A stretch of DNA of 64,000 nucleotides from assembly GCF_021869535.1 (NCBI RefSeq), contig NW_026262626.1, positions 10,726,001 to 10,790,000 of the forward strand, read 5' to 3'. The translations under genes were made by a program, and so were the position numbers. How positions within the stretch are numbered: position 1 is the first letter of the stretch; each line of letters starts with the position of its first letter. The notes beneath the pieces were generated by a model. That model was not told where the DNA came from. It was given only the letters and a program-made list of their open reading frames with translations, and made no database searches. This document shows, piece by piece, positions 10,108-49,095 of the stretch. The DNA is from Mytilus californianus (taxonomy: Eukaryota).

Positions 10108-13100
10108 GATAAGTTACAGTATATGTCAGGATTTGGTAATGAATTTACCAGTGAAGATCCCAGGTGTCCTGGTGCTCTGCCACAAGGACAGGTATTGTAT
10201 TGTACATGTTAACGTTAATCTTTTTATTGTTCAGTTTAGTCTGCATTTTTTATGGGGCTATTTAAACAACTGTTAGATAATTAAATTTATGTTGTACAGG
10301 TGAGACAGTTTTTTCAAGGTGATACATTCCTTGGTTTACTTCAGTTCTACTTGAGCAATGAATTTTGATTGGTAATAGCCTTTCATTTAATTCAAATTGA
10401 ACTTAATTAATTGACAATTAAGTAACGTTACAACTTCGAACTTACTTTTTGTCTTATTTTAGGTTTTGAACAGTCTTGTAAAATTTGTAAATCAGGTTTT
10501 AAGCTGAAACCCCATCTTGACCAACCTAAACTAATGGAAGATTATCCTGGTAAAATTCATATATAAAGTGCATTTGTCACAAATGACCAAAATGCATCAG
10601 GAGGTCAAATTGCATTCTTTAACTATAGAACGGTGTTTATTCAATAAGTCAACCCCTAAGTCATGCTAGGACTAGAACATTCGTAAATAAATAAAACAGA
10701 GTCTTAAAAAGATTTACCAAAAATGCTGAATATCTTAAAGGACAAAAATATTAAAATATAACTAACGACAACCTCTACTGAGATTTCTGTCCTTGTGTAG
10801 ACACATTAACCTGTTGCTGGATTAGATTATTTCTTTTTTGTGCTAAAAACTCCCCTTTTTAATTTCAATCAATGGAGTAAAGCATGTGCATAGAAGAACT
10901 AACACACACATATATATGACAGAAAAGTGTGTCACGTTAAGTTTGCTTGTTTGGAACGTGGACAATAAAATCAGAATCAGCTTTATGAAGTTTAACTCAT
11001 TGAGAGATGTAATCAGGTTATCAGAAATTTTATATTTATTTCTTATTTTGACTGTATATTTTCAGAATAACCCACAGAAATGTAGATATGGACTGTATGC
11101 TGAACAATTATCTGGTTCTGCCTTCACTGCACCAAGGGAAAGTAATGTCAGGAGCTGGCTTTACCGTATCAGACCTTCCGTCAAACATAATCCATTCAAA
11201 GCAATCGACAATGGTCTATTTACTAATGACTGGGACAAAGTTAAACCAAACCCAAACCAGGTAATTAAAATTAGCACATGTCTTGGGCAAAAGTTAAAGA
11301 AGATAGAGAGAAACTTTTAACAGAAAAAATTATCAGATTTTTGTCATGAATTATATTCTAGTTCACAATCTTTGAGAATGTCTATTGTTGAAGATGCATA
11401 TAGGCCTTGGTGAGCAACATAGGCTCTTTAGAACCTTTGTAGTTAATGCTTACTCAGCAACCAAGCATAAGAAAGTGAGCAAGCAGGAAGATTTAATTTG
11501 AAGTAAATTGTAGATTCCACAGACTGACTGTAAAAGCAATGACAAAAGTCAAGTAAAGTTTGGTTTGATACTTTCAAGTTGTTATTTTTTACTGGTTCAT
11601 TATGCAACAAATTCAGAAGACTCTCAGACTGATTCCTTGAAAATAAATTTAAAAACTTTAAATTTAAAAATATTTGAAGTTTTTATTATTTGTGAAAATT
11701 GCGTCTGGATAGGTTTTGCAAAAATAAAGAATCACATTTTATATTTTGATAGCATTATTCGTGCTATTTGTATGTAAGATTTCCTGAAAATGCAATAATT
11801 AATACTGTAAATTCAGAAATTATTGCGTGCATTTATTATTGCGATTTTAAAAAAATGGACAATAATGCGAGTTTAATTATTGCAATTTTAGAATAATCTA
11901 CATACAGAATTATGGTTTAGTTATCAAAATGCGAGTTCTTATTATTGCGATACTCACCGAGTCGCATTATTCGCATTAATAAAAACCTCGCAATAATTTC
12001 TGAATTTACAGTATCCCAATTTTGTCCATTGCTCAAATACCCCAAAATATAATTATGCATAAAAAAAATTCTGAATTTAAAGTACTGTTTGATTTGGTAA
12101 ATATTTCTTGTTTCTGGGACATTTGGTCAAGTAATTATTAAACTTTGTCTGAAAATGAAATTGGACATGGAAAAACAGACTATCTGAACTAAAGTATCTC
12201 TAGCTATTGAGTAAATATTCACTTTTTTCTTGTTCAAGTCTTTAATAAAAAATTGAGGAATAACATCAATGACTTCTACTGAAAATTATGATACATCTGA
12301 GCTGCAAGTTGCAAGGTAATATGTATAATGTTGGAGCCTTTTTTATTTAACTTTTTTATAAGAGAGGTGAAGAATACCAAAGGGACATTCAAACTTTCTA
12401 AATAAGAAAAAGACAATCAGACAAACAACAGTACACAAAACAACATAGAAAACTAAAGACTGAGCAACACAAACCCCACCAAAAACTGGGGGTGATATAA
12501 GGCGCTCAGAAGGGTAAGCAGATCCTGCTCCACATGCACCCATCGTGTTGCTCATGTAAGTACAAACCTGGTGATATGTCTAATTCGGTAGGTCATATTC
12601 GGGGGAAGGGGACGAGATTGTAGTTACGACAATTGGAATTATGTTAATTTTTGTAAATGACAAAAATAGAACTCTGGTTGTCAATCCAAAAATATTTTTT
12701 CTGAAGTTGTGATAACAATTGTATATTTTTATTCTAATCCATGCATATAAATATTGCAGATGAGATGGAAACCATTTGATATAACAAAAGTAAGCCAGAA
12801 GAAAGTGGATTTTGTTCAGGTCTGTATTTGATACATATGTAAATTTAATTTTTACATCATTTCATGGTTGATAGTGAGACAGTAACATTTTTTTGGTTTT
12901 AAAAACTGGATTATTGAATCCAATACTATACATGTGAGACAAAAAATATAAGGTCTGAAATCGCTGCCATCTTATCTTGAGATTTATGTGACTCACAAAC
13001 CATTTTGAGAATTCCTGAATTGATTTGATAAAGGGGGGGGTAGGATGGGGTTCTGAAGACATTAATAAAAAGATATCAAATTAATGATTAGTGTGTGGTT

Positions 13101-34320: not shown

Positions 34321-37300
34321 TTAACAACAAAAGTATTCATTAAAATCTTGTATCTGTAAACATCCCAACCAGAATAAAAAATCAACTAACTCATTTCTGT
34401 CCTCCATTTTCATGATATCAAACGATTTTGTGTAATGAATTGTTGATCTATGGCTGTCAGTGATGTTGTTTGCCATCAAAGCTTCATAATGGTTAAAATC
34501 TGTGTCCATGTACAGAAAAATTATCTAAAATGATAAAAACAAGGGGGGAACAACAACATTGATGCAAATTTGTCCTAAATTGCTTCAACTGAACTTTGGC
34601 GCCAACAAACTACTTTAACCCCGCCACATTCTGCATGTGACTGTCCCAAGTCAGGAGCCTGTAATTCAGTGGTTATCGTTTGTTGCAGTGTAACATATTT
34701 GTTTTTTCGATATTATTTTTACATAAATTAGGCTGTTATTTTTCTTGTTTAAATTGTTTTACATTTGTCATTTCAGGGCCTTTTATAGCTACGTGGTATG
34801 GGCTTTGCTCATTGTTGAAGGCAGTACAGTGACCTATAGTTCTTAATTTCTGTGTCATTTTGGTCTCTTGTGGAGAGTTGTCTCATTGACAATAATACCA
34901 CATCTTCTTAATTTTATATATATATATATATACATAAACCTTATCTGTATCTAATCATTATACATGTATCGTATCATAAACAAGAGGCTTCTAAGAACCT
35001 AAATCGCTCAACAGGAATTTTTGTGTAGATGAATATTTTTGCTGTTTAATATAAATTAATATGTTTCTATTATGCTCTTCAAAGTTTCTTTCTATGTATC
35101 ATTTTTTCTAAAAAAAAAAAAAAAAAAAAAACAAATATTGGGAAAAAAAAATCATCTTTATGGGCAATAACCTTATAAGGGATCAAACTTTATACAAGAT
35201 ACATGTACCATATATGGATCATTGATTGTTGGTTGCATAATGTCCAGTGGGATCATTCACTCCAAGGTTAGTTGAAATTAGTTTGGTTTCAGAGAAGATT
35301 TTTGATAAAGAGTATGACAGACAGACTATTAAAGACAACGAAAGACCAGTAATGGCAAAACCTCACAAGGCCAGGTGAGCTATTTAAAAAAAAAATCTGT
35401 AAAATCATCTTTCAAGGTCATGTTAACTTATTGGTAGGTCTTTCTTTGATGCTTTTGTTTAAAGTTTCTCTCTATAGTTTATGCAAAGACTTAACATTGA
35501 CCAATGAACCATGAAAATGAAGCCAAGATCAAATGAATTTGCCAGTTAGACATGTACACAATAATATCATTCATACATTAAATATAGTTCATTTATTGCT
35601 TATAGTATCTGAGACACAGACCTACCCTGAAAACATAACATTGACCAATGAATCATGAAAATGAGGTCAAAGTCAGATCTAGAAGAACTTGCCAAACATG
35701 TACACCATAATATCAACCCATACACTAAATGTAGTTAACCAAGAAATACATTTATTTATTATAGTATCTGAAAAACAGACCTAACCATGAAAACTTTACG
35801 TAGCCAGTTTATCATAAGATGATGGAAAACCCAGTTAAAAATTTGTTTGTTGTATATTATCAATATGTACTATTAACCTTTTGTTTGTTGTATATTATCA
35901 ATATGTACTATTAACCTTGCTAATCAAGTGTTCATAGAAGATGCACGACCTAAACTGGTTTGCAAAATTTCTGAAGAGTTTCAAAGATCTGGATGGAAAA
36001 ATCACTTTTTGAAAATTTTGTTGAAAATTGACTAATTGCCTAAGCTCCCAAGTCTGGAAAAATAGGTAAAACAACGTAAAACAAACCATTAAAGCAGGTG
36101 CACAACTTCAATATAAGCCCAATCTTCCTGTGAAGTTTCAGCTATTTTCATTAAAATGTGTAGGGCTGATTACACAAAAAAGGGACCCATTTTTACATGA
36201 CAGCCCATTCACCAGCCCAACATCGCCATACTATTAGCAGGCATTGAACTTTGTGCAACCCAGCTTAGAATATGTTATCTTACCTCAGTCCCCATGCAAA
36301 CAATCCCTAGACTCTTTGGAACAAACACAGAGTGCCAACATTCTAATAATAGCTGTGATCCAATCTGTCCAAGTACCTGTTTTTTTAAATGTTTTTCTAT
36401 CCAGGGGGTTTTGGAGTCATCATCATCATCTGCCAGCTTTAATGCATCTTTTTTCACCTTATAACATAAAACATTTTTGTGAAAGTTATTTGTTGGATAC
36501 AAATAATAACTAGAGGCTCCGAGGAGCATGAATCACTCACCAGGAAATAATTGCAAAAAATTCCAAATTAAAATTGAAGATTCAACTTTTAAAGATGTTG
36601 CACAAGTGCCATTGATATGCAGCAAGGAACACATTTTTTTTTTATCAACTGTTAGTCCACAATGATAAACGAAAATAACATTTAAATTATTATTATTATT
36701 ATTATTGAATTCGGTGTGTCTGCATGGGCTTTTCTAGTTTACATTCTTCAGAAAGGCGCAAATAAAAAAATTCAATAGAAAAAATAAAATATCATTTAAA
36801 CTGTAGATGTGTACTTCATGAATTGTCCATTTTTTTCAAATTTGAGCTGTGACAATTGTACAATACATGCTTTTTTCCTTTACAATAAACTTATTTCCAG
36901 TGTTGTAGTAGAACTGTGTAATTTATTTTCTAGTAATCATTCCATTCACCAAATAAATTTGACAAAATGCTTAAAAAGACAAAAAATACACTTTATAAGT
37001 TCTGTGTGTCCAAATTTAAAGTGTTTTCTAGATTTACCTTCATTAGGTACCAAAACCCAAGGATGTACAAATACCTTAAAACATCAGGAGCTATATGCCC
37101 CAAAAGGACCTAAAAATAATAGCCAAATCCATCTCAGGATTGACTAAGGGATTTACACCTACAAGATGTCAACTGATAGAACCACTGTTTAAAGTATACA
37201 TTGAAAATTATTTTCTGTGGTTTATGCAATCTTCTACTCACCTCTGCCAGCATAAGCAATAAACAGGATCTGCCTTCAGATTTCTGTACACGTTGATTAA

Positions 37301-40300
37301 ATCTTACATCAGGAATACATCCAACATACTTATTTCTTATCTTTATTGAAATCTTTCGGTTTTCTCCAAAGCTAAAATAAAGAATATGGAATGGAATGAC
37401 TGCTTGATAGATGCACACAATACAGAATCAGCTTCAGATTAATGTCGTGCTGTTACACCACTGTCTAAGGTTAGGGGAGGGTTGAGTACTCAAAAACATG
37501 TTTTACCCCACCACATTCTTTATGTGCCTGTCCCAAGTCAGGTGACATTAGTTCAGCTGTCATTGTTGGTTTATGTCTATCATATTTGTTTTTGTAAATT
37601 GTTTTGTTATAAACTATAAAATAAAATTGAGAATGGAAATGGGGAATGTGTCAAAAAGAAAACAATCCGACCAAAGAGCATAAAACAGCCCAAGGCCACA
37701 AATGCATCTTCAACACACCTAGAAAATCCTGCAACCCGAGGCAGGCTTCAGCTGGCCCCTAACCAAAAATATGTATATACTTATTATACTAGTTCAGTGA
37801 AAATGTTTGTTTCTGTTTGAATTGTTTTAAATTTTTCATATAGGGGCCTTTAATAGCCTACCATACAGTATGGGTTTTTATCATTGTTGAAGGCCTCACA
37901 ATGGCCTTTAATTTCTTGTATCTACTTTATTTGAACTCTAGTTGATAGTTGTCTCATTGGCAATCATACAACATCTCCTTATTTTTATTTAGGTAAATAA
38001 ACATTGATTAGCACAACCAAATTAATCATAAACAAGAACATGTGTCCACAGGACACCATGACACGCTGGCACTATCAATATTCCATTTTCAGTGTATAGT
38101 GATATTGATGTCAAATTGTAATTTGGCATAAAATCTTATAAGTTCACATCATAATGAACATGTGTACTAAATCTCAAGTTGATGTGACTACAACTTCATC
38201 ATGAACTACCTTGACCAAACTTTAAACTTGAGAAAATAATAGTTGCATACTATCACCATTCTATCTATATATACTTAGTGACCCGTGAAATTTTAATTAA
38301 AATTATAATTTGGCTTATAAATTTAAACAAGAGTGCACATGCTGAAATGTCTCGCCTTCTTTACAAACCATTGATTTTATGTTGATAGTCCTAAATATAA
38401 AGCTTTACTACAAGTAACACATAAACTTAACATGATCCAAGAAAATGAGGTCAAGGTCAGATAAACCAAACAAGAAATACATGTACACCTTACAATCATT
38501 CAATAAACCAAACATAGTTGACCTATTGCTTATAGTTTCTAAGAAACAGTCTTAACCAAGAAAACTTAACATTGACCAATGAACCATGAAAATGAGGTCA
38601 AGGTCAGATGAACCATGCCAGACAGACATGTACACCTTACAATCAATTTATGCATTAAATATAGTTGACCTATTGCTTATAGTATCTAAGAAACAAACTT
38701 AACCATGAAAACTTAACATTGACCAATGAACCATGAAAATGAGGTCAAGGTCAGATGATACCTGCCAGACAGACATATACACCTTACAATCCTTCCATAC
38801 AACAAATATAGTTGATCTATTGCTTATAGTTGAAGAAAAACAGACCAAAACACAACAAGAATGCACATGCTGAAATGTCTCGCCTACTATACTGACCATT
38901 AATTTTATGTTGATAGTCCCAAATATAAAGTTTAACAAGTATCACATTTACGATCCAAGAAAATGAATTCAAGGTCAGATAAACCAAGCCGGAAACTCAT
39001 GTACACCTTTAATACAATCATTCCACACACCGAATATAGATGACTCATTGCTGATAGTATGAAAGAAAGACCAAACCATGGAAATTTTATATTAATCAAT
39101 GAACCATAAAAATGAGGTCAAGGTCAGATGAACCCTGCCAGACAGACATGTACACCTTAAAATCATTCCATGCATCAAATATAGTTGACCTATTGCTTAT
39201 AGTATCTAAGAAACAAAGATAACCAGGAAAACTGAACACTGACCAATGAACAATGAAAATGAGGTGAAGGTCAGATGATACCTGCCAAACAGACATATAC
39301 ACCTAACAACCGTACACCAAATATAGTTGACCTATATATTGCTTAAAGTTTAAGAAAAACAGACCAAAACACAAAAACTTAGCATTAAGAAAAGAACCAT
39401 GAAAATGAGGTCAAGGTCAAACAAAACCTGCCAGACTGACATGTACATCGTAAAATATTTCCTTACACCAAATATAGCTGACCTATTGCATACAGTATTA
39501 GAAAAACAGACCAAAACACAAAACTTAACATTGAGCAATGAATCGTGAAAATGAGGTCACGGTCAAATAAAATCTGCAAGACTGACATGTACATCATAAT
39601 ATATTTCCATACACCAAATATAGTTGACCTATTGCTACAGTATTAGAAAAACAGACCAAAACACAAAAATTTAAGATTGAGCAATGAACCGTGAAAATGA
39701 GGTCAAGGTCAAATAAAACCTGCCAGACTGACATGTACATCTTAAAATATTTCCATACACCAAAGATAGTAGACTTATTGCATACAGTATAAGAAAAACA
39801 GACCAAAACACAAAAACTTAACTATAACCACTGAACCATGAAAACGAGGTCAAGGTCAGATGACACCTGCCAGTTGGACATGTACACCTTACAGTCCTTC
39901 CATACACCGAATATACTTGACCTACTGCTTATAGTATCTGAGATATGGACTTGACCACCAAAACTTAACCTTGTTCACTGATCCATGAAATGAGGTCGAG
40001 GTCAAGTGAAAACTATCTGACGGGCATAAGGATCTTGCAAGGTACGCACATACCAAATATAGTTATCCTATTACTTATAATAAGAGAGAATTTAACATTA
40101 CAAAAAATGTTAACTTTTTTTTCAAGTAGTCACTGAACCATGAAAATGAGGTCAAGGACATTGGACATGTGACTGACGGAAACTCCGTAACATGAGGCAT
40201 CCATATACAAAGTATGAAGCATCCAGGTCTTCCACCTTCTAAAATATAAAGCTTTTAAGAAGTTAGCTAACGCCGCCGCCGGATCACTATCCCTATGTCG

Positions 40301-43078
40301 AGCTTTCTGCGACAAAAGTCGCAGGCTCAACAAAAACTTAACACTGAGAAATGAACCATGAAAATGCGGTCAAGGTCAAATAAAACCTGTGAAACTGGCA
40401 TGTACATCATAAAATATTTCCATACACCAAATATAGTTGACCTATTGCATATAGTATTAGAAAAAAAGACCAAAACTCAAAAACTTAACTTTGACCACTG
40501 AACCATGAAAATGAGGTCAAGGTCAGATGCCACCTACCAGTTGGACATGTACACCTTACAATCATTCCATATACCAAATATAGTAGACCTACTGCTTATA
40601 GTATCTGATATATGGACTTGACCACGAAAACTTAACCTTGTTCACTGATCCATGAAATGAGGTCGAGGTCAAATGAAAATTGTCTGACGGGCATGAGGAC
40701 CTTGCAAGGTATGCACATACTAAATATAGTTATCCTATTACTGATAATAAGAAAGAAATTTATATTACAAAAAATGTTGACTTTTTTTCAAGTAGTCACT
40801 GAACCATGAAAATGAGGTCAAGGACAATGGACATATGACAGACGGAAACTTCGTAACATAAGGCATCTATATACAAAGTATGAAGCATCCAGGTCTTCTA
40901 GCTTCTAAAATATAAAGCTTTTAAGAAGTTAGCTAACGACGCCGCCGCCGCTGCCGGATCACTTTCCCTATGTCGAGCTTTCTGCGACAAAAGTCGCTGG
41001 CTCGACAAAAATCACATTATAAGGAACATGTTGAGTAATCATGTTTCAAGTTGATGTGTCTTCAATTTCATCACATACTACCTTGACCAAAAATTTAACC
41101 TGATATGGGACGGATGAAGGAATGAACTGAGACACAGACTGGAAAAATAATGCCTCACTACTATCATACACTTATTGATCCCAATGTTCTATTTCAGCCA
41201 TGGTTGCCATGTTGTTTTTTTTTTATGTTGCAAGCATAATTGATATTTTTTTTTTTATATTGCAGGCACATTTTATTGATAATTTGTTTTAAGCAAGTTT
41301 GTTAATGGATCAAATCTTCAGATAAAATTTTTAAACAAGATTACATAAAGAACATTCATGTATTTTGTAACATCTGGCCCACTACAGGAGAAGATTTTGA
41401 TTTTTTTTAAAGTTGAAAAAGACGGACAAACAGAGGCCCATGATGGATGCTAAGTAATGGCAGTAGCATGCATGGCCTTTTTGGCCAAATGACCTGAAAA
41501 TGTATTGACCCCAATGTTCTATTTCAGTCATGGAGGTCATGTTTTGAAAGTTGCAGGCATGATTGATATTTTTTTTAAAATTAGAAACCTCAAGGGTGAT
41601 TGAGGCCAAGTTTCTCGTAATTGGCCTAGTTGATTCAGAGAAGATATTTGCAAAACTTTACATTGACCTATGATGATGGGTGTCATTTCACCATTACTCC
41701 AGGTAGTGCTCTAAAAATATAACAAAGATGCACGTTTTTGTAGAACACCAAGTGATGGCAACTTAATGGCAGGTGTCTGAGGTGAGCTTAGAAGTTTTAG
41801 ACGCACGGACAACAGATGCCAAGTGGTGGCAATAACTGCTTTGGATCTTTCAGGACTACATGTTACCTACTCTGGCTGAAGAAAAAAGATTTCTGTAAAC
41901 TTCATGAACAAACTTGTGAAAACACTTTCCCTTAAAATAACATCTTCAATTTTATCTCTAATCGGTTCAGGTGGTACTTCCAATGGTAAACCTAACTTTT
42001 GAAGTACTTTCTGTATCTCCGAAAGAAATCTGGATGTATTCGTGGACCAATCCAAAAACATTCTGCAAAAAAGTAAATAACAAACTATACATGTACAATG
42101 AATGCTTTCAAAGGTGATATTGCAATATCCAACATCTTTAATGCGATCTATAAAAGCAGTAATGTACTATATAAAATACAATCAATTTTTAGCCCAGGTA
42201 ATATCCATTGGTTCTCAGGTTGACTTATTGGGTTTTGGGGTGTTTTGGGGGAAATCGGGGTACCAAAATTAAACAGTTAAAAGTACAAGTTTAAGTTCAT
42301 ACATGTACATGTATTCTTGAAAAAAAAGATGGATATCCAGGATCAACTGAAACAGATTAAAGTAATGATTCATTCAAGGGAAATAATTTTACACGAGTAA
42401 TCTAGAAATTTCAGACTCAATGTATTGAGGCTTAACAAAGTATTGGTTTTTTGTAACGTTTTAGGTGCATCGTCTTCACAAAATTTGAATCTTGGGAGCA
42501 AGTACATGTACAAATATGAACATGGAACGGGCAGCCCAACAACTATAATTAGTTCTTGAGAGTCCTCGGGAAATCGTGGTTCCCTACCTTTTGCCAAGTT
42601 TGTCAGTCATCAAACCAGACTCATTTGTCTCACCATTCAGAAATTCTTCTGAAAATTCCATAAGAAGTATTTTTGCCTCCTGGAGGTCTATGATTGCTTC
42701 TTTTTCAAATTCTAAAAGTTCATTTCGAAATTTTGGTGCTAATGACACTTTCTTATTCCAGTCAACATTCTCCAGGTTAAAATTAACATGCTCTTTTGTA
42801 AACTTGCACAGTGACTCAATACACGTGGGTATCTCTACAGTGTTTCTTCTCAGATTCCTACGGCTTCTTCTGTCATTTAGTGGAAATATTTCCAGTGCAA
42901 GTTTAAGCTTTTTTTTTAGCTCTAACACAGTAATCGGATTGTCCGCGAAAAATAGCCCAATGTCCGTCAATTCTTCTGTTCTGAAGTCCGATGATTTTAG
43001 TCGTTTGCTTTCTGAAGATGACAGCTTGCGATCGTATTGAGACTCTTCTGATGATGATAATTTTCTTTTTTCCATCAT
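34321..43078 (-). CDS. Uncharacterised PD-(D/E)xK nuclease-fold protein, about 396 aa. Exons (minus): 43078-42588, 42062-41871, 37371-37242, 36457-36284, 34524-34321
   Basis: Five exons with GT-AG sites (gtaggg, gtaggt, gtgagt, gtaaga donors) join in matching phases (2,2,0,0) into one ORF: ...LRESVFTSLFMKF...KYVGCIPDVRF...LLLMLAE|VKK...VLGQIGSQLLLE...LGIVCMGTE|IIFLY...STIHYTKSFDIMKMEDRNELVDFLFWLG. The gene structure is well supported; the fold call is from motif recognition only. Confidence 0.8.
35843..35918. repeat. Perfect 38-bp tandem duplication
   Basis: TTGTTTGTTGTATATTATCAATATGTACTATTAACCTT x2. Confidence 0.95.
35916..36053 (-). CDS. Possible cryptic or cassette 138-nt exon of the nuclease-like gene
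   Basis: Strong pyrimidine tract and ttttccag acceptor, open phase 0-0 frame, weak donor gttaat. The flanking exons already join sensibly without it. Confidence 0.2.
38326..41011 (+). mobile_element. Composite HINE array of about 120-135 bp CATGAAAATGAGGTCAAGGTCA units, inside intron 2 of the nuclease-like gene
   Basis: Two 5' ends AACAAG..GCACATGCTGAAATGTCTCGCC (38326, 38854), about 20 related units, and two 3' ends with (GCC)n and the hairpin GCGACAAAAGTCGC (about 40336 and 41011). Confidence 0.85.
42395..42490 (-). CDS. Possible optional 96-nt exon of the nuclease-like gene (FKFCEDDAPKTLQKTNTLLSLNTLSLKFLDY)
   Basis: Acceptor cttgctcccaag after a 97-nt intron; phase 2-2 symmetric and frame-preserving. 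The donor (gtgtaa) is weak. Confidence 0.4.
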
Positions 43079-47974: not shown

Positions 47975-49095
47975 AAAAAATTGAATCATAATTTCCTGTC
48001 AATATGCACATCTACATAGTATGTCCTTATTATCTACACAGTTTCATGAAATTCTGTTGTGTGGTTTGAGAGGAGTTGCGATGACAAAAGATTGCAGTAG
48101 TATATTGGGCAAATAAGTTCAAAGGGGCGTAACTCCTGGAAAAAAAATTGAATCGTAATTTCCTGTCGATATGCACATCTACGTAGTATGTCCTTATTAT
48201 CTGAAAAGGTTTCATGAAATTCTGTTGTGTGGTTTGAGAGGAGTTGCGATGACAAAAGGTTGCAGTAGTATATTGGGCAAATAAGTTCAAAGGGGCGTAA
48301 CTCCTGGAAAAAAAATTGAATCGTAATTTCCTGTCTATATGCACATCTACGTAGTATGTCCTTATTATCTGAAAAGGTTTCATGAAATTCTGTTGTGTGG
48401 TTTGAGAGGAGTTGCGATGACAAAAGGTTGCAGTAGTTTATTGGGAAATAAGTTCAAAGGGGCATAACTCCTGGAAAAAAAATTGAATCGTAATTTCCTG
48501 TCGATATGCACATCTACGTAGTATGTCCTTATTATCTGAAAAGGTTTCATGAAATTCTGTTGTGTGGTTTGAGAGGAGTTGCGATGACAAAAGGTTGCAG
48601 TAGTATATTGGGCAAATAAGTTCAAAGGGGCCTAACTCCTGGAAAAAAAATTGAATCGTAATTTCCTGTCGATATGCACATCTACGTAGTATGTCCTTAT
48701 TATCTGAAAAGGTTTCATGAAATTCTGTTGTGTGGTTTGAGAGGAGTTGCGATGACAAAAGGTTGCAGTAGTATATTGGGCAAATAAGTTCAAAGGGGCG
48801 TAACTCCTGGAAAAAAAATTGAATCGTAATTTCCTGTCGATATGCACATCTACGTAGTATGTCCTTATTATCTGAAAAGGTTTCATGAAATTCTGTTGTG
48901 TGGTTTGAGAGGAGTTGCGATGACAAACTGTTGCAGTAGTACATTAAAGTAAATAAGTTCAAAGGGGCGTAACTCCTAGAAAAAGAATTGAATCGTAATT
49001 TCCTGTCGATATGCACAACTACATAGTATATCCTTATTATCTAAAAAGGTTTCGTGAAATTCTGTTGTGTGGTTTGAGAGGAGTTGCGATGACAA
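47975..49095. repeat. 168-bp tandem (satellite-like) array, about 6.7 copies, inside a HINE-like element (about 47878-49135)
   Basis: Near-identical units (AATTGAATCGTAATTTCCTGTCGATATGCAC...) giving 56-aa periodic ORFs, followed by a GACG/GACT microsatellite. Confidence 0.95.

Follow-up and report, generated by a model that had tools for sequence, protein, structure and literature searches.

Positions 34321 to 43078 of a 64,000-nucleotide (nt) stretch of the Mytilus californianus genome (contig NW_026262626.1, forward-strand positions 10,726,001 to 10,790,000; hereafter the window, whose numbering is used throughout) hold a five-exon gene, LOC127724194. Its predicted product ends in a domain that appears to belong to the restriction-endonuclease-like PD-(D/E)xK superfamily. 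The minus-strand join of its exons (43078-34321) gives a coding sequence (CDS) of 1191 nt that translates into 396 amino acids (aa) with no internal stop. All four introns run GT..AG with a polypyrimidine tract before the acceptor, in phases 2, 2, 0 and 0. A sequence-only reading of this stretch had assembled the same frame, stop-free and about 396 aa long, from five open-reading-frame fragments joined through GT-AG introns in matching phase. The motifs it quoted are all present in the translation: LRESVF (E209), GCIPDVRF (D249), LAE/VK (E271 and K273), GQIGSQLLLE (Q302) and LGIVCMGTE/IIF, where the slash marks an exon border. The gene is laid out as follows, with structural elements named after the predicted model described below.

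Exon 1, 42588..43078, minus strand: CDS nt 1-491, aa 1-164; start ATG (MMEKRKL), donor AAAAG/GTAGGG; disordered basic Ser-rich N-terminus with KRLK at aa 24-27, followed by small elements of alpha/beta type and by long helix one of two.
Intron 1, 42063..42587, minus strand: 525 nt, phase 2, GT..AG; contig pieces from runs X1, X2 and X9 begin at the exon 2 border (2-nt AG ambiguity).
Exon 2, 41871..42062, minus strand: aa 164-228; second long helix and nuclease-fold helix alpha-1; E209 codon at 41929-41927; joined to exon 3 in RNA contigs.
Intron 2, 37372..41870, minus strand: 4499 nt, phase 2; packed with highly repeated elements; skipped in RNA contigs.
Exon 3, 37242..37371, minus strand: aa 228-271; strands beta-1 to beta-3; P248-D249 (D codon 37310-37308); last codon E271 (37244-37242); donor GAG/GTGAGT.
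Intron 3, 36458..37241, minus strand: 784 nt, phase 0; cuts the E-V-K motif between E271 and V272.
Exon 4, 36284..36457, minus strand: aa 272-329; V272-K273 (K codon 36454-36452) and an acidic loop, helix 297-313 with Q302 (36367-36365) and E310, and strand 320-326.
Intron 4, 34525..36283, minus strand: 1759 nt, phase 0, GT..AG; contig pieces stop at the exon 4 border.
Exon 5, coding part, 34321..34524, minus strand: aa 330-396 and TAA; last core strand, hairpin and C-terminal helices.

We aligned contigs of four public runs (X1, X2, X9 and X15) to window positions 36200-42199. X9 is a declared transcriptomic RNA-Seq library; X15 is a large run whose library type is off record and which we presume to be DNA. 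One contig each in X1, X2 and X9 has pieces on 41871-42064, 37238-37371 and 36280-36453. Because the coordinates of these pieces are contiguous within the contigs (429-622, 623-756 and 757-930 in X1), exons 2, 3 and 4 are joined directly, as predicted from the sequence. The intron 3 junction is present in all three contigs with an aligner offset of 4 nt, and the offsets of 2-4 nt at the contig junctions are alignment ambiguity: AG and GTGA fit both sides, and GTAA and ATAA are one letter apart. X15 contigs cross the exon/intron borders unspliced (36200-36963, 37221-37409 and 41274-42089). The contigs reach 428 nt upstream of exon 2 (X1) and 563-592 nt past exon 4, beyond an alignment that spans exons 2 to 4, and these lengths fit exon 1, and exon 5 plus a 3' untranslated region of ~360-390 nt. 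These data confirm that the five-exon gene is real, spliced and expressed. As a separate observation, position 37347 in exon 3 reads T>A on the plus strand in all four runs, turning codon TCA into TCT (Ser236, synonymous); since the presumed DNA run is among them, we read this as an allelic difference from the reference and not as editing.

The spliced translation is 100% identical over residues 1-396 to database protein P0003, the NCBI product of LOC127724194 in M. californianus, which was returned by a HMMER search with an exon-5 profile and whose copy was used for the protein analyses. The sequence-only reading had called the gene hidden. It is not, because its translation equals an annotated NCBI protein letter for letter, and orthologues are annotated in four Mytilus species; the absence of a vertebrate name does hold. 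A literature search returned no paper mentioning LOC127724194 or its nearest relatives. The orthologues are 87% (M. galloprovincialis), 88% (M. trossulus) and 95% (M. coruscus, partial) identical, and among Pinctada proteins the closest reaches 39%. In M. trossulus the exon borders of the orthologue coincide with those of LOC127724194, its introns differ considerably in length, and all motif residues are unchanged. The ratio of nonsynonymous to synonymous substitution (dN/dS) against this orthologue stands at 0.19 overall, with 0.155 for the C-terminal domain, at a dS of 0.33. On these comparisons LOC127724194 reads as a conserved host gene under purifying selection, neither decaying nor freshly inserted. 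In the M. trossulus assembly GCA_036588685.2 an identical 396-aa orthologue occurs at three loci (L043, L044 and L045), two of them ~3.2 Mb apart on one chromosome and the third on an unplaced scaffold, whereas the M. californianus genome has only one near-identical locus. Either recent duplication or assembly redundancy would account for the triplet.

The full-length AlphaFold2 (AF2) model, built from a 54-sequence family alignment, has a predicted local distance difference test score (pLDDT) of 85.4 and a predicted template modelling score (pTM) of 0.87. It consists of a disordered stretch (aa 1-20, pLDDT <50), a small alpha/beta part (aa 26-97), a long helical hairpin (aa 115-188) and a C-terminal alpha/beta domain. 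In this domain, helix 209-221 is followed by strands 235-239, 242-246, 250-255 and 264-271, helix 297-313, strands 320-326 and 329-336, and then a hairpin and C-terminal helices; this order contains the alpha-beta-beta-beta-alpha-beta core of the PD-(D/E)xK superfamily. The full-length structure search was swamped by helical-hairpin matches to residues 110-202, and the domain was therefore refolded alone (residues 200-396, pLDDT 89.3) and compared with ~48,000 representative solved chains. All of the best 50 matches, which were those listed, are restriction-endonuclease (REase) fold proteins. They include mL65 (Z 8.8, 168 residues aligned), the nuclease domains of BpuSI (Z 8.3, 132) and DrdV (Z 8.2, 120), a putative REase-domain protein (9y1l; Z 7.7, 123), mL37 (Z 7.3, 156), an HsdR fragment (Z 7.0, 125), Uma2/DUF820-type proteins (Z 5.8-6.7, 115-123) and Hjc (Z 6.1, 106). 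Further entries are tRNA-splicing endonuclease, Vsr, lambda exonuclease, VRR-NUC, RecB and McrC.

Other structure-based comparisons add context to this list. Foldseek against the PDB, run with both the full-length and the domain model, gave no match at E <= 0.001; its weaker rows (E >= 3e-3) are of the same kind and serve as corroboration only, and a second look at the Foldseek candidates gave Z 8.4-9.1 for mL65 and Z 8.0-8.6 for mL37. An Atlas shape search returned the family's own mollusc clusters, fungal DUF7924 (template modelling score, TM, 0.62), PDDEXK_12 (0.59), the N-terminal part of a fungal kinase (0.59) and HSDR_N (0.56). HSDR_N clusters were also the nearest named ones by language-model features (score 0.80), which we treat as a lead only. 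Our fold assignment rests on the uniformity of the 50 matches and not on any single Z score. The models support a restriction-endonuclease-like PD-(D/E)xK fold for the C-terminal half of the protein, in agreement with the sequence-only reading.

The motif residues fall at corresponding places in the model. E209 opens helix alpha-1 (209-221), P248-D249 directly precede strand 250-255, E271-V272-K273 end the adjoining antiparallel strand 264-271, and Q302 and E310 lie on the following helix 297-313. The predicted topology places the D and ExK elements that had been recognised from the letters on neighbouring strands. Conservation was counted over 54 family representatives, the denominator being the number of sequences with a residue in that column:

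P248: kept in 47 of 53.
D249: kept in 45 of 53, with N in 5.
E271: kept in 47 of 54.
K273: kept in 47 of 54.
Q302: kept in 48 of 53.
E310: kept in 42 of 53.
E209: kept in 34 of 51 (67%).

The D, E and K of the superfamily motif are hence kept in 85-87% of representatives, and Q302 in 91%. Judged from topology and conservation, E209, D249, E271-V-K273 and Q302 occupy textbook positions and would form the classical metal-binding and catalytic constellation. The E...PD...ExK...Q set that had looked intact in the single sequence is upheld by the model, the matches and the family alignment alike.

Searches for known families by sequence returned little. Pfam searches with single exons, with 10 full-length members, and then, at E <= 10, with 51 domain sequences and 54 full-length members gave no consistent family; searches of NCBIfam and PADLOC were empty; and sequence-profile searches of the PDB with the full-length and domain alignments gave coiled-coil noise only. 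Neither the Pfam searches nor the model revealed a fused kinase or nucleoside triphosphatase (NTPase) domain, and the protein stands alone as initially described.

The gene belongs to a sizeable family. An exon-5 profile finds 54 loci in the M. californianus genome at E <= 0.001, a lower bound, of which 6 contain stops; the loci are partly clustered locally, on contigs C154, C132, C35 and C13. Exon 5 carries an IxYT...DR...LFWLG..Q signature common to the whole family, with R372 present in 53 of 54 sequences. Against a protein library of 50%-identity representatives, the same profile has 130 matches at E <= 0.001. The named members that were looked up all come from pteriomorph bivalves (Mytilus, Pinctada, Saccostrea and Ostrea), except for one from a nemertean, Lineus, and a word-based homologue search with the domain profile returned bivalves only. 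The paralogues are 27-57% identical per exon and have all four intron positions in common, with canonical splice sites at homologous positions. In the genome, the copies are hit by the individual exons at places apart from one another, and none of the genome matches is an intronless family copy. Between two close paralogues on contig C143, dN/dS is 0.27. The copy-number and selection checks that the sequence-only reading had suggested thus return at least 54 loci and, for LOC127724194 itself, the low ratio given above. We class the group as a new animal family without a Pfam model, inside the very well-known PD-(D/E)xK superfamily and expanded in pteriomorph bivalves.

Some individual members were also recorded. 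LOC127724369 (P0156, 394 aa) is a distant member on the window's own contig (C46, 42.6 Mb); its identity is 31% across half of the domain. Pseudogene-like copies occur at C24:38617618-38623038, C91:8005734-8011189 and C97:2115443-2123775. The exon-5 match of each contains TAG and TAA, that of C97 also TGA, and the stops stand at the same two places in the retrieved C24 and C91 sequences; in all three copies exon 2 is also still matched separately. Their appearance is that of a single pseudogene multiplied by segmental duplication, not of retrocopies.

Dimers are the usual state of REase-fold enzymes. The homodimer model of P0003 scores 0.47 by the interaction prediction score from aligned errors (ipSAE; runs 0.39, 0.47 and 0.50), with 0.00 for the best control, at least 43% of contacts in common between runs and a partner pLDDT of at least 73. 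In calibration, 21 of 30 proteins solved as same-chain pairs and 0 of 23 solved as single chains attained the mark; among eukaryotes the counts were 17 of 29 and 0 of 30. The predicted interface is symmetric and formed by residues 133-174 (helical hairpin), 189-214 (linker and alpha-1) and 228-239 (a strand of the nuclease domain). A model that passes its controls in this way supports a homodimer but does not show one. As for location, the basic Ser-rich N-terminus, a KRLK element (aa 24-27) that recurs as KRL[KR] in close paralogues, and the lack of a hydrophobic signal or presequence-like start suggest a nuclear protein.

We propose that P0003 is a three-part intracellular protein, with a disordered basic N-terminus, a helical hairpin and a C-terminal PD-(D/E)xK domain, that would function as a divalent-metal-dependent endonuclease, its catalytic role being deduced from fold and motif. 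A symmetric homodimer would act on nucleic acid, probably DNA in the nucleus. In our judgement this ordinary, intron-bearing, expressed host gene, a member of a large bivalve family, probably encodes a nuclear, dimeric, metal-dependent nuclease.

Several observations weigh against this proposal. D, E, K or Q is missing from roughly 9-15% of the family, and E209 from a third. The paralogue models on contigs C88 and C122 are without the motif lysine; these paralogues may be inactive, or the modelled exon-4 acceptor may be off. The Pfam, NCBIfam, PADLOC and PDB profile searches give no sequence link to any characterised nuclease, and Z scores of 8-9 are only middling on the scale of the tool. The fold does not prove activity, as mL65 and mL37 are non-enzymatic ribosomal proteins, and the dimer predictor was calibrated mainly on microbes.

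What is new here is a confident model-based assignment of fold and active site for a Pfam-less animal family whose expansion has given mussels, pearl oysters and oysters dozens of loci. The gene itself is already annotated and conserved, and current knowledge is not overturned. To our knowledge, few animal proteins outside DNA repair are stand-alone PD-(D/E)xK nucleases with an intact motif, and where a gene family has expanded strongly in a bivalve lineage, a link to immunity is common. For these two reasons the family is a reasonable candidate for nuclease-based defence or genome maintenance.

A sharper version of this idea, which refines our proposal more than it opposes it, is that the protein serves as an effector in innate immunity or genome conflict, either by breaking down foreign or transposon DNA or by setting off cell death. 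The strong expansion of the family in its lineage (at least 54 loci, partly in local clusters, and ~6 pseudogenes) would suit such a role, as would the patchy range of pteriomorph bivalves and one nemertean. So would the structural neighbours, which include fungal PDDEXK_12, DUF7924, the N-terminal part of a fungal kinase and a cluster from Mucoromycota with a Crinkler header in 17% of its members (a weak shape match, TM 0.42). However, LOC127724194 evolves conservatively at dN/dS 0.19 with one-to-one orthologues across Mytilus, which is not the signature of an arms race, and the TM scores to the fungal clusters are modest (0.42-0.62). The Crinkler header itself (PF20147) has no match at E <= 10 in the 54 family members, and no signal peptide or sensor domain was detected. 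The loose comparison with Crinkler-type REase domains made in the sequence-only reading is compatible with weak fungal structural neighbours. We regard an effector role, including the anti-transposon, antiviral or cell-death one put forward in that reading, as speculative though possible, with the balance of evidence tilting away from it.

An alternative that we rate a little lower, as unlikely, is that the protein is a catalytically silent scaffold or nucleic-acid binder in which the REase fold is kept for RNA or DNA binding or for dimerisation, as in the mL65/mL37 pseudo-dimer. The best whole-protein matches are indeed mL65 (Z 10.0, root-mean-square deviation 4.6, 222 residues aligned, model residues 20-388) and mL37 (Z 9.4, 217 aligned). 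These two cover ~85% of the domain, versus ~63% for bacterial nuclease domains; both are rRNA binders reported to have been repurposed from endonucleases (PMC8998825), and a symmetric dimer is predicted for P0003 as well. Against this, P0003 carries all of the E...PD...ExK...Q residues and most family members keep them (motif 85-91%, E209 67%), the pattern expected under catalytic selection. There is no sequence kinship with PDCD9 either: when hhalign compared the family profile with P0167, a PF07147 protein of full length, the probability came to 0.6%, and none of the 54 members matches PF07147. Moreover, the mussel has its own PDCD9 gene elsewhere, and the Ser-rich N-terminus seems unlike a mitochondrial presequence.

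Least tenable is a transposon-derived gene, either a recently domesticated mobile-element nuclease or still part of an element: REase-fold nucleases do occur in eukaryotic mobile elements, and the gene lies in repeat-dense sequence and is present in many genome copies, but the four intron positions shared by such divergent paralogues, the lack of intronless copies among the matches and the Mytilus orthologues conserved under purifying selection disfavour a recent origin of this kind, the repeats lie within introns and not at the gene ends, and Pfam searches found no transposase, reverse transcriptase (RT) or integrase domain in the protein, which makes this origin highly improbable. We reject it on the old shared introns, the one-to-one orthologues and the fact that no transposon hallmark was seen, none having been specifically searched for; on the same grounds we find no support for the suggestion that the nuclease was probably domesticated.

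The window also holds features of other kinds. Within intron 2, ~38432-40678 is occupied by arrays of a 146-147 bp tandem satellite (2.4-6.8 copies per array, 76-86% matches) that is extremely abundant in the genome and also appears in contigs of the RNA runs. The adjoining 37400-38000 is an interspersed repeat that is even more abundant, and the intron has very high depth in all runs. On the plus strand, 10886-11320 is an open frame matching the N-terminal domain of homogentisate 1,2-dioxygenase (PF20510, E 1.6e-25), an exon of a housekeeping gene. On the minus strand, 48030-49016 is a tandem repeat whose units (repeated ...SSQLLSNHTTEFHETFSDNKDILRRCAYRQEITIQFFFQEL...) keep two frames open over 117-192 aa; its Pfam matches are marginal, and we take it for a probable satellite, not a gene.

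Returning to the putative nuclease, its closest bacterial counterparts are the nuclease domains at the N-termini of type I HsdR and of type IIG/IIL enzymes (BpuSI, DrdV and BsaXI; HSDR_N, PF04313), with which it has the PD-(D/E)xK core and a C-terminal helix in common (DrdV Z 8.2-8.4, EcoR124I HsdR Z 5.3). Those are domains of large enzymes that also carry a methylase or helicase, whereas the mussel protein stands alone with a helical N-terminal half, and HSDR_N has no match at E <= 10 among the family members. The fungal PDDEXK_12, DUF7924 and Pkinase_fungal domains and the Crinkler-linked REase domains resemble it in being eukaryotic, uncharacterised or conflict-associated, and of similar size; PDDEXK_12 (PF20516), DUF7924 (PF25545) and PF17667 have no sequence match in the 54 members. 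REase domains are taken to be the toxic module of Crinklers (PMC5289972). Crinklers carry a Crinkler/Ubl header and usually an NTPase or kinase partner in fungi and oomycetes, whereas the mussel protein, from an animal host, has an REase fold and neither the header nor an NTPase or kinase.

The best structural matches remain mL65 (MRPS30) and mL37 of the PDCD9 family (PF07147), mitoribosomal proteins reported to be repurposed endonucleases with an REase-derived fold and a (pseudo)dimeric arrangement (PMC8998825). With the domain alone, the second look aligned 167-174 of its 197 residues at Z 8.4-9.1. The architecture is in common with the PDCD9 family over the whole model (Z 10.0 and 9.4) as well as over the domain (Z 8.0-9.1). 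The mussel's own gene of this mL65/mL37 type lies at C99:22513635-22525837 on the minus strand, with a large first exon that has an open frame of 311 aa. mL65 and mL37 are structural, rRNA-binding proteins, whereas the mussel family keeps a complete catalytic motif. It is conceivable, if a long shot, that the bivalve and nemertean family is a catalytically intact sister of mL65/mL37, and with that an extant relative of the endonuclease that the metazoan mitoribosome took over and repurposed. If so, the family would have its whole-protein architecture and dimeric mode in common with mL65/mL37 and still cut nucleic acid, possibly as an expanded lophotrochozoan nuclease of defence or genome maintenance. 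The likeness to mL65 and mL37 would then offer a possible handle on the origin of these animal-specific ribosomal proteins.

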